64,000 nt of DNA, taken from Podarcis muralis. Taxonomy: Eukaryota. Under the pieces are notes generated by a model. The model saw nothing but the letters and a program-made list of their open reading frames with translations. It was not told the DNA's origin and did no database searches. Made by a program: the position numbers and the translations under genes. The DNA lies in the NCBI RefSeq assembly GCF_964188315.1, contig NC_135660.1, positions 47,368,001 to 47,432,000 on the forward strand, in the 5' to 3' direction. Of the stretch, positions 1-55,565 are shown piece by piece (the stretch's first letter is position 1; each line of letters opens with the position of its first letter).

Positions 1-25
1 AAAAATAAAGAAGTCTCCATTCTAA

Positions 26-273
26 GCCAGTGTGGTGTAGTGGTTAAGAGCGGTGGACTAGTAATCTGGTAAACCGGGTTCGCGTCCCCGCTCCTCCACA
101 TGTAGCTGCTGGGTGACCTGGGGCTAGTCACACTTCTTTGAAGTCTCTCAGCCCCACTCACCTCACAGAGTGTTTGCTGTGGGGGAGGAAGGGAAAGGAG
201 ATTGTTAGCCGCTTTGAGATTCCTTCGGGTAGTGATAAAGCGGGATATCAAATCCAAACTCTTCTTCTTCTTC
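26..273 (+). mobile_element. tRNA-derived SINE, Squam3-like (lacertid type)
   Basis: tRNA-like head (agccagtgtggtgtagtggttaagagc...ccgggttcgcg) and (CTT)n tail; near-identical copies at 7500, 29186, 36519, 55320; TSD ttctaagc at 20-27 and 271-278. Confidence 0.85.
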
Positions 274-1703: not shown

Positions 1704-2829
1704 CATTGAAATGGCCAATCTAGGGGTGAGCACGGCCCTTCCCATAGACCACCACTGAGTGGCAGCTAGGAAAAGAGAACATCTCTGCCCCATGCAGCTG
1801 CAGTGTCCAAGGAGCTGCAACCTGCACTCCTGTCTGAGCCATGCCTGCATTGTGTACTGTTGACAAAATAAATGTACAGTAATCACATAAGTGGTGCTAG
1901 AACAGGTAGCAGTAACAGCAGCATTGGCATGGAAACTGCAATCCTAATGACACTTCAGCAATCACTTGTAGTACAATAATGGGCACTTCTTTTCCCATTC
2001 CCCTGTCCAAATTAAGCCTTAATTTCTTGGTCTAAAAAATCAATGGTGGAAGTAAGACCTGAACTGCCAGTCCAGTCGGCATCCAAACCTACAATGAGAA
2101 GAGGGTGCAAGCTTGTCTATCCCTTGGGCAGCGAAAACCTTTTGACCAGCTTCACCCCAACCCCCTCTTGCCTGTTCTGTCCTGTTCTTTGAGTACTAGT
2201 GTCAAGGTGACCCATTGGATATGATTTATTTGGGTATTCAAACAGCTCTTGATAATATCCCTCATAAAACAATATTAATCATTTTACATTTATGAGCTCA
2301 CATTAATGATAGTGTCTTTTATCTAGATGACTCGGCAAAGTGTTTCACCAAGTCCCTACTAACTATGCATTGTCCATGTCACAGGGAAGGGATACAAATC
2401 TGGAATATAATGTTACGAACTTATAGTTTTTACACAATCCAAACTGTGCAAAGCATACAAGATGGTGGGGAAAGGTGCATTTAAGGGGAAAGCAGGAGAA
2501 CAGGAGAAATACCAATTAGTAGATGTAATAGGGTTGTCATATTTCAAAAAGTAAAATTACTGACACTCGCAATGTTGTGGAGCTCATAGAAACCCACCAA
2601 AAATAGTGATTTTAAGCTGACATATGGCAAGCCTAAGATATAGAGACTTGGTATATATTTCAAAAGTAGATATTTCAAAAGTAGATAGCAGTATTATGCA
2701 TCGTCTTATACCCGAAGCTCTCACGGCACCTTGTAAAATGCCACGAGTAAATATTAAAAATCCAAATAAAAGTCAGTTAAAAATTTATTTAAAAACCCTC
2801 AGGCATCAAACACAATAACATAATCACCA

Positions 2830-7499: not shown

Positions 7500-7753
7500 A
7501 AGGAGAGGAGGAGGAGAGTCTGGATTTGATATCCCGCTTTATCACTACCCTAAGGAGTCTCAAAGCAGCCAACAATCTCCTTTCCCTTCCGCCCCCACAA
7601 CAAACACTCCGTGAGGTGAGTGAGGCTGAGAGACTTCAGAGAAGTGTGACTGGCCCAAGGTCACTCAGCAGCTGCATGTGGAGGAGCGGAGACGCGAACC
7701 CGGTTCACCAGATTACGAGTCCACCACTCTTAACCACTACACCACACTGGCTC
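7500..7753 (-). mobile_element. Squam3-like SINE
   Basis: Reverse complement of 26-273. Confidence 0.9.
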
Positions 7754-7797
7754 TAGTGTCCTGAATCTGCTAAAAGTATGCCCCTGAACACTAGTTA

Positions 7798-29185: not shown

Positions 29186-29434
29186 AAGAAGAAGAAGAGT
29201 TTGGATTTGATATCCTGCCTTTCACTCCCTTTAAGGAGTCTCAAAGCGGCTATCATTCTCCTTTCCCTTCCTCCCCCACAACAAACACTCTGTGAGGTGA
29301 GTGGGGCTGAGAGACTTCAAAGAAGTGTGACTAGCCCAAGGTCACCCAGCAGCTGCATGTGGAGGAGTGGAGACGCAAACCCGGTTCCCCAGATTACAAG
29401 ACTACCACTCTTAACCACTACACCACACTGGCTC
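29186..29434 (-). mobile_element. Squam3-like SINE
   Basis: Reverse complement of 26-273 with (AAG)n tail. Confidence 0.9.
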
Positions 29435-29500
29435 TTCCCCACTTGGTTTTCAGTTGAGGGCAGCAACCAATTAGCATTATTGTTACGTCTTTAATCTTGT

Positions 29501-30209
29501 TGTTGTTGTTGTCTTCAGTCTGTCTTGAGGGACAATGGAGTGTGCCTCCAGGGGTGAGGTCAAATCACTGCATTAGCAGCACCTAAGTAACCTCCCCGGG
29601 ACACAAGCCTGGGTAGTGTGTATAGAGGTCCTGGGCTGCCTAGATAACAAGATCCCCTTCTCGGTCTCGCTGATATGGGCCAACGGAAAAGAGAGCAATA
29701 CGTATGGCATCAGCTTGGCTGCAGTTGTTGTTGGAAGGAGGCAAACAAGGCGCCATCCAACTGTTTTAGGGACTCCACTCTGGATTTGTGTAGGGTTTAC
29801 TTCATAGCCTTTTCTTCTCCCACATGGCAGCTGCAGTTTAGGATCAAAGTTTTCTATCTCCTTCCCACATTGACAAGCCCCATCTGCCCCTCACTTCCCT
29901 CTTTAGCATGTGCAGAAACCACCTTCCTGACTATTGGTCTTGTCCACACAATCCACCAGAGCCTGTCTTTGCATGCAGGGGAAGTCCCTAACTCACTGAG
30001 GATTTGAGACCCAGCGGCTACCCTCACCTCGTTTAGCCAGCCAATCAAAGCCATTCCCAGGGTGTGGCGGCTGTACACACTGACAGCTTTTAGGAACCAC
30101 AGGTGAGAGCTGAGTGCAGTTGGGTACCAAAGGTGGACAAACTACCTTTGGTAGCATAATGTGTCCCCTATCAGAAGCACTCCTCCTCCTCTAACACCCC
30201 GTACACCCC
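29501..30209 (-). mobile_element. Non-autonomous RTE-type retroelement: ribozyme head, no ORF, (CAA)n tail
   Basis: (TTG)n tail at about 29498-29513; imperfect TSD tttaatcttgt (29490-29500) / tttcatcctgt (30210-30220), 9 of 11 identical; no RT-like ORF; RTE affiliation inferred from the tail type and 5'UTR-like motifs. Confidence 0.7.
30021..30209 (-). ncRNA. Putative HDV-like (nested double pseudoknot) self-cleaving ribozyme
   Basis: Minus strand: P1 GGGGUGU (30209-30203, repeated at 30200-30194) / ACACCCU (30065-30059) with G1.U wobble; P2 CUCUCACCU (30109-30101) / AGGUGAGGG (30029-30021); P3 GGU (30098-30096) / GCC (30068-30066); P1.1 CC (30094-30093) / GG (30058-30057); J4/2 GCUAA with candidate catalytic C at 30036. 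Confidence 0.72.
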
Positions 30210-31540
30210 TTTCATCCTGTATGGTTACTAAAAACATGCACTAGAGTGAGAGGAAATCAACGCCAGATTGACATCATGTTCAACAATGTGAAAGTATTCC
30301 TTTAATCTGCTTTGAACTCTTTTTCTCCCTTCCAAGTTCCCAACGAAATTTGTATGCAAGAGCTCTTTAAACATAAAAGGTAATTAAATGACAAGACCCA
30401 TCATAAATACAGAGCTCCTCAAACAGAAGGAAAGCACGCTTGGCCAAAAAGAAATTAATTAAATATAATCTGATTTTTAAAAGTTAATTATATATCTTAT
30501 GTTGTCCTTATTCAATAGTACTGTGTTGGGAGGATAGAAATCAGAGCATTATTTAAGGGCTTCTCTGCCTTTAACTTCTGCCTATATTTCTTCCTATGCA
30601 CATAAGAAACTGGCCCATCTACCTCAATGTTGACCACACAAGGGTTGGGAACCTTTGGCCCTCCAGATGTCTCTAAACTTCACCTCCCAACAGCCCCAGC
30701 AAGCTTGGCTGCCCGTGTTTCTTTAGGGTTTCTCCCAGCCCTTTCCAGAGACGATGGGAACTGAACCCGAGATGTGCTGCATACAAAGCAAATGTTCTAC
30801 CACTCAGTTATGGCCCTCCTCTAAAGTCAGGGTTTTTGACTCCAGTAGAACACTCGAAAATAGATCGGCTGAGAAAGAGCAAGCAGAAGAGAAACTGACT
30901 ATGCGTTCTCAGTGAAATTATTGTACTGAGGCGAATTGGAGTGCTCATAAAATGTATGAAAGACTTTAATGCCTCAGGGTCTTTTATTAGAGCAGCGGTG
31001 CAATCTTGTACATGTCTGCTCAGAAATCAGTCCTACTGAGATCAGTGGGGCTAACTTCAGGCAACGTGTGCATAGGATTGCTACCTAATTGTTCAGAGGC
31101 ACCAGGAGGTTTCCAGCTACATTCAGAAGGTCGGGAATTTAAAGGTAGCTTCTCCTCTGCTCTTTTTCCACTTAAAGTCAAACAATGCTGAATATCAGCT
31201 CTTAGTCTTAGCATATATAATATAAAGGATGAATTGGCCAGAGATGTTAGGGATCCCCTATACCTCCCTTTGTTGACATGGTTTGCAGTGTAGATGTGAC
31301 TTGCTGCATTTATCTTTTCTGTCCTGGGTCTACAATATTGCAAAGATAGTAGTTGTATGTAATTGTTGTTATCCATGCTGTTGGACATTTATCAGCATAG
31401 TTGAAGGTGCCGTGACTTTCCACGGATCCTCAGAATACTGATTACATGGCCACACAACAGATATATGCCACATGTTGGCCAGGAAGTACTTTCCTCTGCC
31501 ATTTTAAATAAGTCCCTCACAGCTTGTGTCCAAAAGCCTT

Positions 31541-32029
31541 TGTCACGGTCCAGTCTATGGGTGATCGAAGTCCCAGCTGAGGACATCAGGACCAGGGGCA
31601 AGATGGCGGGGTGGGAGCAGGAACGAGAGCCCAGAAGCCAGGGGTCAGAGGGTCAGGAAGCAGGGAGTCATGACATCAAGGGTCAGAGGGTCAAGAAGTA
31701 AGGAATCATGAAGTCAAGGGTCCGAGGGTTGAGAAGCAAGGAGTCACGAAGTTGAGGGTCAAGAAACAAGGAGTCAAAAAGCCAAGGTCCGAGGATTAGG
31801 AAGCAAGAAGCCAAACGTAGCAAGGCATGAAACGTGTTGTTGTGGCAAAGAGCCGAAGGGAAATGCTGACCTTAAATCCCTTCCCAGCTCTTGCCACCAG
31901 GTGCAGTGAGTTGCCAAGTGGCCTCATCTGTGTGGCTGCGCCTTGCCTTTCCAGAACAAACTTAGGAAGGCCCCAGTCCTGCGAAGCCCTACTGGTCACA
32001 GGGCCTGGCTCCTGCACGCACTCCTGACA
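31541..32029 (-). mobile_element. Solo LTR (Gypsy-like)
   Basis: TGTCA...TGACA termini; 5-bp TSD gcctt (31536-31540) / gtctt (32030-32034); TATA-like atttaa on the minus strand near 31873; internal tandem repeats. Confidence 0.78.
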
Positions 32030-36409: not shown

Positions 36410-36870
36410 ACCCACCTAGGTCTCAATGATACAGACCAGATCAGCCTCTTCATCCAGAAACAGATCGTGAATGAGGGAGGTCTTACTCCAAGCCAACCTG
36501 GCATTCAGCAACATGCTGGAGAGCCAGTGTGGTGTAGTGGTTAAGAGCGGTAGACTCATAATCTGGTGAACCGGGTTCGCGTCTCCGCTCCTCCACATGC
36601 AGCTGCTGGGTGACCTTGGGCCAGTCACACTTCTCTGAAGTCTCTCAGCTGCACTCACCTGTTTGTTGTGGGGGCGGAAGGGAAAGGAGAATGTTAGCCG
36701 CTTAGAGACTCCTTCGGGTAGTGATAAAGCGGGATATCAAATCCAAACTCTTCTTCTTCAACAGCAGTCACAAGCTGATAGGACACCAACTGCCCATGCC
36801 TGCCCCACCTCTCACACCATACCTTCCCCTCCCCTGAACCACTATAGGACCTTCCCTGCTTCTTGCTTCC
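36410..36870 (-). pseudogene. L2 ORF2 N-terminus (AP endonuclease start) split by a SINE
   Basis: Minus strand PIVVQGRGRYG leader (about 36870-36810), then LLNARLAWSKTSLIHDLFLDEEADLVCIIET (36515-36418), the APE N-terminal N...ITET motif. Confidence 0.75.
36519..36759 (+). mobile_element. Squam3-like SINE inserted in L2
   Basis: Near-identical to 26-273; short caaca duplication at both flanks. Confidence 0.9.
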
Positions 36871-38472: not shown

Positions 38473-38672
38473 CCAGAAGGAGAGATGTGGCTCAGAGGTT
38501 GAGCATGTGCATTGCATGCAAAATGTCTGAGATTCAATTCTTTGTCTCTCCAAGAAGGGCTTTAGAAAGAATCTTGCATGCGACCCTGCAGAGCCACTGC
38601 CAGCCAGTGTTGGCAAAACTCAGCTGGATGGGCAAGAGGTGTCTCCTGCTATGAGGCAACTTCCTGACCATA
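38473..38672 (+). mobile_element. Squam2-like SINE, diverged
   Basis: tgtggctcagaggttgagcat head and gagccactgccagccagtgt body, related to 317-490. Confidence 0.6.
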
Positions 38673-46933: not shown

Positions 46934-47598
46934 CAAAGGTTTGCTGAGATATAAAAACCCATAATTGTCACCCAAGAGGTAACCAAAGAAAAGCGCCAGA
47001 GCCAAGACCAGACATTGTAGCAGAGCCACACCGTGGGAATGACAGGCCTCCTCAAGATTCTTGGTTGCCTCTCAGCATATTGATTCATAAGGATGATCTA
47101 GATGTTTTTGGAACACATGGTTCTCAAATTTAAGAGAGTGATTTACCTACAGTTGCAAAAGCTAAAGAGAGGGTCCCTTCTTCCTGACTCAGAACCCGCA
47201 GTCTGCAAGCAGGATCTAGCCCCCAACCAGATTTCATCTGGCTCTTTGGATCTCTCCTTCTTATCAGCTGCTCAGCAGACGACAGCAGAGAGGGGCAAGG
47301 GCTTTGCTGTTGTGTCAAGTATGCACATGTAGTTCATTTCTCTGCAAGTTTAAAGCAGAGGATGAAATGGCTCAGGTAGACTTGGGTTCTTTTCAAATAT
47401 GCCCAAAAGTACTCATGCATTTTGCAATTGCATGCATGCAGTTTTCAGGATGCAAGTGAATTTTGAAGTTTGAGATCTTATAAGAGGTAATTCAGGGCTT
47501 GCAGTTCATCTGTGCATTGATACTGTTTGCATTCTTTCTTCTGGGATTAGAGAGTTCTTTGTGCCTGTATTACAGTCAGGATAGGTCAAGGTGTTGGA
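46934..47598. repeat. Copy 1 of a local direct duplication
   Basis: 46934-47215 matches 51871-52152 (7 substitutions in 282 bp); about 47425-47598 matches about 52157-52328 (roughly 89%). Confidence 0.95.
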
Positions 47599-55319: not shown

Positions 55320-55565
55320 ACCAGTGTGGCATAGTGGTTAAGAGCGGTAGACTCGTAATCTGGTGAACTGGGTTCACTTCCCTGCTCTTCCACATGCAGC
55401 TGCTGGGTGACCTTGGGCTAGTCACACTTCTCTGAAGTCTCTCAGCCCCACTCACCTCACAGAGTGTTTGTTTTGGGGGGAGGAAGGGAAAGGAGATTGT
55501 TAGCCGCTTTGAGACTCCTTCGGTTAGTGATAAAGCGGGATATCAAATCCAAACTCCTCCTCTTT
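55320..55565 (+). mobile_element. Squam3-like SINE
   Basis: Near-identical to 26-273. Confidence 0.9.

Follow-up and report, generated by a model that had tools for sequence, protein, structure and literature searches.

A putative HDV-like ribozyme at the head of a high-copy, ORF-less retroposon in the lizard Podarcis muralis

The window, that is, the whole 64,000-nucleotide stretch of Podarcis muralis DNA analysed here, carries on its minus strand a non-LTR retroposon of about 709 bp, a single member of a family of high copy number that lacks ORFs (Table 1). Copy number was assessed by aligning the contigs and reads of four public runs with the window at 80% likeness. The summed depth reaches 10^4-10^5 from 29481 to about 30136-30140, compared with 9.85 on the unique flank from 30219 onward (about 10^3-10^4-fold), and the repeat occurs in organism A, the species of the window, as well as in another lizard, organism C; there are thousands of family copies in at least two lizard species. 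No ORF piece of the retroposon has a Pfam match on either strand, and no second copy occurs within the 64-kb window, where the sole recurring repeat is an unrelated SINE-like one. The 3' limit lies at 29497 or 29501, since tail and TSD overlap. Identification as a solo LTR was considered and rejected on the grounds of the microsatellite tail, the 11-nt TSD and the lack of TG...CA ends. The initial annotation had proposed an HDV-like self-cleaving ribozyme at the 5' end of a lizard retroelement; as regards the element this is borne out, for the motif stands in sense orientation at the head of a genuine retroposon.

Table 1 Features of the retroposon, of its putative ribozyme head and of a neighbouring repeat (window positions; sequences of minus-strand features are read on that strand).
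Feature	Position	Strand	Remarks
ORF-less high-copy non-LTR retroposon, one copy, ~709 bp	29497..30209	minus	from depth, Pfam and the Podarcis lilfordi relative
TSD, 5' copy ACAGGATGAAA	30210..30220	minus	directly upstream of G30209
TSD, 3' copy ACAAGATTAAA	29490..29500	minus	first 4 nt overlap the last CAA unit
T5 run	30230..30234	minus	ends 10 nt before A30220, the opening base of the TSD
(CAA)5 microsatellite tail	29497..29512	minus	TRF: (TTG)5.3 on the plus strand
P1 5' strand, copy a, GGGGUGU	30203..30209	minus	G30209 is G1 and very probably the first base of the insertion
P1 5' strand, copy b, GGGGUGU (alternative)	30194..30200	minus	
J1/2, long	30110..30193	minus	holds the closing helix and the 10-bp hairpin
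P2 5' strand CUCUCACCU	30101..30109	minus	pairing probability ~1.0 in the nested ensemble
P3 5' strand GGU	30096..30098	minus	GGC in the Podarcis lilfordi copy and nearly throughout the family
L3, 27 nt	30069..30095	minus	begins UCCUAA here, UCCUAG in the family
P3' GCC (30068-30066) abutting P1' ACACCCU (30065-30059)	30059..30068	minus	
P1.1 partner GG, directly 3' of P1'	30057..30058	minus	can pair with C30094 and C30093 of L3
P4 UGGCU/GGCUG, 6-nt loop	30038..30053	minus	helix -2.9 kcal/mol
J4/2 GCUAAACG, 8 nt	30030..30037	minus	candidate catalytic C30036
P2 3' strand AGGUGAGGG	30021..30029	minus	
~250-bp repeat with tRNA-like head	29186..29435	minus	
~250-bp repeat with tRNA-like head, other copies	25..272; 7506..7754; 36520..36759; 55321..55564		

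A relative of the retroposon was recovered from Podarcis lilfordi (locus L001), where a copy 76% identical to ours spans window positions 30102-29521. It was found by HMMER with a spurious ORF of the repeat, the match being a Podarcis lilfordi "hypothetical protein", which as a query returned itself only. Homologous-protein searches with the window ORFs gave no relatives, and exact 28-mer and 25-mer patterns had no match in metagenome, prokaryote-genome or viral contigs. The metagenome contigs L002-L009 retrieved by HMMER have approximately 120-250 nt of the 3' half of the element in common with it, the ribozyme region not included. Within this half, a module of about 195 nt (29631-29825) is 68-72% identical to positions ~1996-2187 of L003-L009, a locus that is itself 94-99% identical over 4 kb among several unrelated metagenome assemblies, Tara samples included; the short contigs L002 and L007 match the same module at 77-78%. 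Part of the retroposon may be shared well outside lizards. The segment 29823-29859 is far more diverged from the family in the window copy than the rest: depth there is 40-200 as against more than 10^4, and the loose-end consensus sequences of the family align at only ~70%.

As for transcripts, the reads give no support to expression of the window copy: its unique flank is free of RNA reads, and read starts do not pile up. More than 100 RNA-seq reads of one run (X23) match the 44 nt of 29999-30042 alone and run past them both ways into different, well-agreeing sequence (agreement 0.86-0.91), which indicates that they derive from an expressed, diverged relative of the retroposon family.

The two TSD copies, 11 nt each, agree at 9 positions. 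Of 20000 random 30-nt stretches of the window, compared with the 5' boundary as anchor, 186 match as well as this (p ~0.009). A second TSD candidate, GUAACCAUA/GUAACAAUA, was rejected because it leaves 10 extra nt past the (CAA)n tail which are absent in the Podarcis lilfordi copy. A 2026 study of reptilian Bov-B LINEs describes tails of (CAA)2-6 and a "Tn-TA" signature, in which the TSD begins with an A after a T and a T-run lies about ten nt upstream of that A (PMC13295347). The insertion described here bears each of these marks, namely a (CAA)n 3' end, a TSD whose first base, A30220, is preceded by T30221, and a T-run ~10 nt upstream. At the level of sequence, its 3' end resembles the Podarcis muralis Bov-B end in the supplement of that study (PMC13295347) over ~28 nt including the tail; the like stretch consists of GACA(C)GACU.AA plus tail only, and its score equals that of shuffles when the tail is removed. 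No similarity to the retroposon head was found in the Podarcis muralis Bov-B 5' ends of the same supplement (PMC13295347). A 3'-end similarity that covers ~28 nt and is not significant without the tail does not prove a Bov-B partnership. The partner is nonetheless likely to be a Bov-B-type LINE, and the retroposon, a non-autonomous one, was probably mobilised by a LINE of the Bov-B/RTE type.

Since the TSD adjoins it with the Bov-B signature, the insertion very probably starts at G30209, which would make this base both G1 of the first P1 candidate and the predicted cut site. The boundary carries an error of ±1 nt because a G comes after both TSD copies. The cut had originally been placed at either G30209 or G30200; the TSD boundary leaves the predicted site at the former and disfavours the latter.

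The strands of the putative ribozyme follow one another in the order P1-P2-P3-P3'-P1'-P4-P4'-P2', that of the nested double pseudoknot of HDV. Both copies of GGGGUGU pair perfectly with P1', the G1.U wobble included, and thus give a P1 within the 6-7-bp range that opens with G1 and sets G1.U at the cut site. The 9-bp P2 contains one U.G pair, and GGU pairs with GCC in P3. L3 begins with UCCU, whose CC is complementary to the GG after P1'; for P1.1 this is a matter of sequence compatibility only. The long J1/2 is itself structured, with GAGUGC/GCACUC (30182-30177/30117-30112) and a perfect 10-bp hairpin (30153-30144/30134-30125). On all these helices the initial annotation was accurate in letters and position. 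P4, which it had called weak and reminiscent of CpG decay, is weak indeed, with 2 Watson-Crick and 3 wobble pairs; the Podarcis lilfordi copy has a C at the position of 30039 that would restore one P4 wobble pair, in agreement with such decay. Its reading of J4/2 needs one amendment: C30036 does lie within GCUAA, whereas the junction is 8 nt long, not 5. The pattern C30036-UAA combines a candidate catalytic C with an A-rich linker, and J4/2 is kept as GGCUA.AC in the Podarcis lilfordi copy. An L3 beginning UCCU.G, the GGG after P1' and the G1.U wobble are presumably features in common with the HDV ribozymes, and we take the GGC-UAA of J4/2 to be like the antigenomic form. The head of the retroposon differs from HDV in a J1/2 of 84-93 nt, in a hairpin inserted in L3, in its weak P4 and in a J4/2 linker that is 2-3 nt longer.

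How far such an arrangement could be fortuitous was assessed with a purposely permissive descriptor comprising a 7-bp P1 with G1.U, a J1/2 of at most 120 nt, a P2 of at least 6 bp, a 3-bp P3, an L3 of 5-30 nt starting with UCC, a P3' that abuts P1', GG, C[U/G]AA plus 0-3 nt, and P2'. Its sole match on both strands of the 64-kb window is the site at 30021-30209. In 400 first-order Markov random windows it yields 0.01 matches per window (0.075 in a looser version), and with P2 set to at least 9 bp it yields none in the 400. This search, of a kind put forward with the initial annotation, therefore finds the site, finds it unique in the window and places it above single-window chance. The statistic alone is not decisive, since the descriptor was written after the candidate had been seen and hundreds of windows were scanned. 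A covariance-model search, likewise put forward there, went against the proposal: the Rfam HDV, CPEB3 and drz models have no match in the whole window at the gathering score, at E<=10 no HDV-type match appears on stretches of 801 nt and 107 nt, and the fetched relative loci have none either. Some silence from Rfam is expected, because a long J1/2 and inserts in L3 depress the scores. Folding energy is unremarkable overall (z-score -0.86). The nested HDV helices and P2 sum to ~-48 kcal/mol, compared with an MFE of -70.8; the MFE fold pairs the G-rich 5' end elsewhere, and this alternative nested fold is far more stable.

A post hoc descriptor that, at 0.01 matches per window over hundreds of windows, would give several chance matches, the lack of an Rfam match, the z-score of the MFE and an L3 that is far too long would all suit the idea that complementary segments came to stand in HDV order by chance in the 5' region of a retroposon and were never a ribozyme. 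We consider this unlikely. The absence of any match in 400 random windows with a P2 of at least 9 bp argues against it, as do the position of the match at the 5' end of the retroposon, with the TSD boundary on G1, and the states of the family at three positions of the motif, all of which improve the fold and one of which is the conserved G of L3.

These three states are the following. At 30030 the family reads, near-unanimously, G instead of C on the plus strand (C instead of G on the minus strand); with G30100 this base forms a tenth P2 pair, which leaves both junctions shorter. At 30096, G replaces A (minus strand, C replaces U) at 47495 of 49174 depth, turning P3 into GGC/GCC. At 30090, C replaces T (minus strand, G replaces A), again near-unanimously, so that UCCUAA of L3 becomes UCCUAG. 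All three (3/3) are more HDV-canonical than the state of the window copy, and the Podarcis lilfordi copy carries all of them; they are the motif differences found among the best-supported differences listed, with 212 further, less well supported ones lying outside that list. By a rough count, the model would be improved by only ~4% of all single substitutions that the region could undergo. The direction of these differences is suggestive, short of a formal test, of descent of a decayed window copy from a more canonical ancestor. HDV-like ribozymes strongly conserve the G at position 6 of L3, which pairs in a reverse wobble with the U that opens the loop; a Nasonia R2 ribozyme that had lost this G no longer cleaved (PMC3774820). 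With an A at this conserved position, efficient self-cleavage of the window copy is unlikely, and the copy is probably a poor cutter or an inactive one.

In part of the family the partner of G1 in the G1.U wobble reads C (loose end at 30080). The comparison set for compensatory change consists of the majority states at the three sites and of one damaged Podarcis lilfordi copy, which lacks P1 and most of the 5' strand of P2. Upstream of ~30102 the homology of this locus to the window copy is no better than that of shuffles, and the locus is therefore uninformative on P1 and P2. At its positions 2604-2612 (minus strand) stands TATATAAAG, some 35 nt ahead of the conserved core; this may be a TATA box or a product of chance.

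Could the conserved letters be DNA motifs of a 5' Pol II promoter instead of RNA pairings? A CACCC box (30066-30059) and an inverted CCAAT box, GATTGGCUG (30047-30039), are found here and are partly kept in the Podarcis lilfordi copy, and non-LTR elements often have internal promoters (PMC3774820). Such a promoter would leave unexplained the letters of L3 and J4/2, the 9-10-bp P2 and the fact that a P1 complement stands precisely at the 5' end; it would, moreover, be compatible with a ribozyme and does not exclude one. As an account of the conserved letters in place of RNA pairing, we hold it to be very improbable.

The odd feature of the fold is L3, which is 27 nt long as opposed to the canonical 7-8 nt and thus falls outside the compact L3 of HDV-like ribozymes. 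The excess is a hairpin, GCUGU (30087-30083) / ACAGC (30074-30070), situated between the canonical 8 nt and P3'. It is present in the window copy, in the family loose-end consensus, where it has a sixth pair, and in the Podarcis lilfordi copy (5-6 bp overall), and it is therefore ancestral to every copy seen; no version of the family with a canonical L3 occurs among the copies examined. In an alternative register, GGC / UCCUAGAA / GCU, L3 would have its canonical 8 nt, but 19 nt would then separate P3' from P1'. We know of no verified HDV-like ribozyme with a 19-nt hairpin insert in L3 or with the arrangement of the alternative register.

The second particularity concerns the 5' ends of the family copies. 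Depth is 26016 at 30096-30136 but drops to 497 and further to 130 across 30137-30218, and several contigs that run on for 42-1006 nt cease to align at 30140-30148. From this fall and these stops, most of the family has its end near 30148, and the copies that can be shown to have the P1 strand number no more than about a dozen. The J1/2 module varies between copies, given that one family contig joins 30117 to 30185 through 8 letters that replace 30118-30184, with both flanks and the 5'-most segment kept. Near 30148 the family consensus is GGGGUAGU, which can pair with ACACCC(U/C) either through 5 bp and two mismatches at the top or through 7 bp with a bulged A; such a pairing is in the range of active R2 ribozymes (PMC3774820). 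R2 cut sites are documented to shift upstream when P1 re-pairs with flanking sequence (PMC3774820). By analogy, we hypothesise that in the subfamily of the window copy the cut site moved ~60 nt upstream and captured a better P1 complement. The likeness to the R2 shift (PMC3774820) would lie in the ~60-nt 5' extension past ~30148 and in a new end that is the better complement of P1', and it is drawn here from depth and from 30-letter loose-end consensus sequences.

An L3 hairpin in every copy seen, copies that mostly end near 30148 and not at 30209, and the TATATAAAG upstream of the Podarcis lilfordi core could also be reconciled with a fossil: the HDV-like ribozyme of an ancestral LINE, inactivated by the hairpin before the family amplified. 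The 5' ends of the family would then stem from transcription starts or from stops of the reverse transcriptase. This course of events appears decidedly unlikely to us, because an inactivated ribozyme would hardly have left most of the family with the conserved G of L3, the GC pair of P3 and the 10-bp P2, and the coincidence of the subfamily's 5' end at G30209 with a perfect 7-nt complement of P1' would have to be an accident.

Based on the above data, we propose, with a confidence that goes only slightly beyond even, that the family to which the window copy belongs has as its head a variant HDV-like ribozyme, which set the 5' end of the RNA at G30209, and that the window copy has since decayed. 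In this mechanism, the source element would be transcribed inside a longer host transcript, in which the double pseudoknot of P1, P1.1, P2, P3 and P4 would form. C30036 in J4/2 would then catalyse the cut 5' of G1 and release an RNA starting with GGGGUGU. The machinery of the partner LINE would reverse-transcribe this RNA from the (CAA)n tail into a T-rich target. That the fold is catalytic and that its cut end serves retroposition is our inference, whereas the pairings, the repeat family, the TSD and tail and the direction of the family differences are observed. Subsequent drift of the window copy would have changed the G of L3 into A and the C of P3 into U and removed the inner pair of P2. 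A more far-reaching version seems to us possible yet doubtful as a whole: a squamate retroposon of thousands of copies, with neither a Pol III head nor an ORF, would have its RNA 5' end set by an HDV-like ribozyme that tolerates the L3/P3' hairpin, would be cut ~60 nt further upstream in one subfamily, and would be served in trans by Bov-B.

In R2, R4/Dong, L1Tc, Baggins and RTE, HDV-like ribozymes are established whose cut falls at the very first base of the element, and active ones of R2 may have a J1/2 of 23 to more than 700 nt, a P4 that is weak or absent and 1-2 mismatches in P1 (PMC3774820). The retroposon head resembles these retrotransposon ribozymes (PMC3774820) in the order of the double pseudoknot, in a predicted cut just ahead of G1, where the element starts, in a long, variable J1/2 and in its weak P4. 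It is unlike them in its ORF-less carrier, the 19-nt hairpin insert in L3, a J4/2 longer by 2-3 nt and the lizard host. With RTE/Bov-B it has the type of tail and TSD in common. The partnership of the Sauria SINE with Bov-B (PMC13295347) offers another parallel, being likewise that of a non-autonomous element with the Tn-TA signature and a microsatellite tail; in contrast to the Sauria SINE, our retroposon has a head that is not tRNA-derived and a (CAA)n tail, as in the Bov-B LINE, instead of (ACCTTT)n.

In the literature searched, no HDV-like ribozyme is described in squamate Bov-B-type or gene-less retroposons and nothing was found that links Bov-B, squamates or lizards to such ribozymes, a weak negative given that most subscription journals were outside the search. 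Gene-less mobile elements with a self-cleaving motif include NARTc of Trypanosoma, the hammerhead retrozymes and Penelope-derived repeats. Each of these has either another class of ribozyme or hosts of another group than ours, and nothing here points to circular RNA. To our knowledge, verified vertebrate HDV-like ribozymes are few, namely CPEB3, a lamprey example and some R2 elements. If young copies of the family cleave, the retroposon would be a "ribozyme-headed SINE", a non-autonomous element that does without a promoter of its own, and its thousands of natural variants would serve the study of the HDV fold. Cleavage would also mean that L3 tolerates a helical insertion, and the descriptors used in genome searches for the HDV-like class could be widened accordingly. 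If young copies do not cleave, the family would hold a well-preserved fossil of an HDV-like ribozyme.

Other repeats lie in the vicinity. The SINE-like repeat of ~250 bp has a (CTT)n(GTT)n tail and a head, GCCAGUGUGGUGUAGUGGUUAAGAG..., that resembles a tRNA, and its five copies in the window are 88-91% identical; the one at 29186-29435 sits 55 nt downstream of the retroposon tail. ARAGORN calls no tRNA at this repeat. Its tail differs from the (ACCTTT)n of the Sauria SINE (PMC13295347). On the other side of the retroposon, a tandem repeat at 31642-31781 (38-bp unit, 3.2 copies, 81% match) overlaps rows of period 30 and period 15. Lastly, a borderline Rfam tRNA match at 38481-38550 on the plus strand (29.3 bits, gathering score 29) is probably the head of a SINE or else a tRNA pseudogene.
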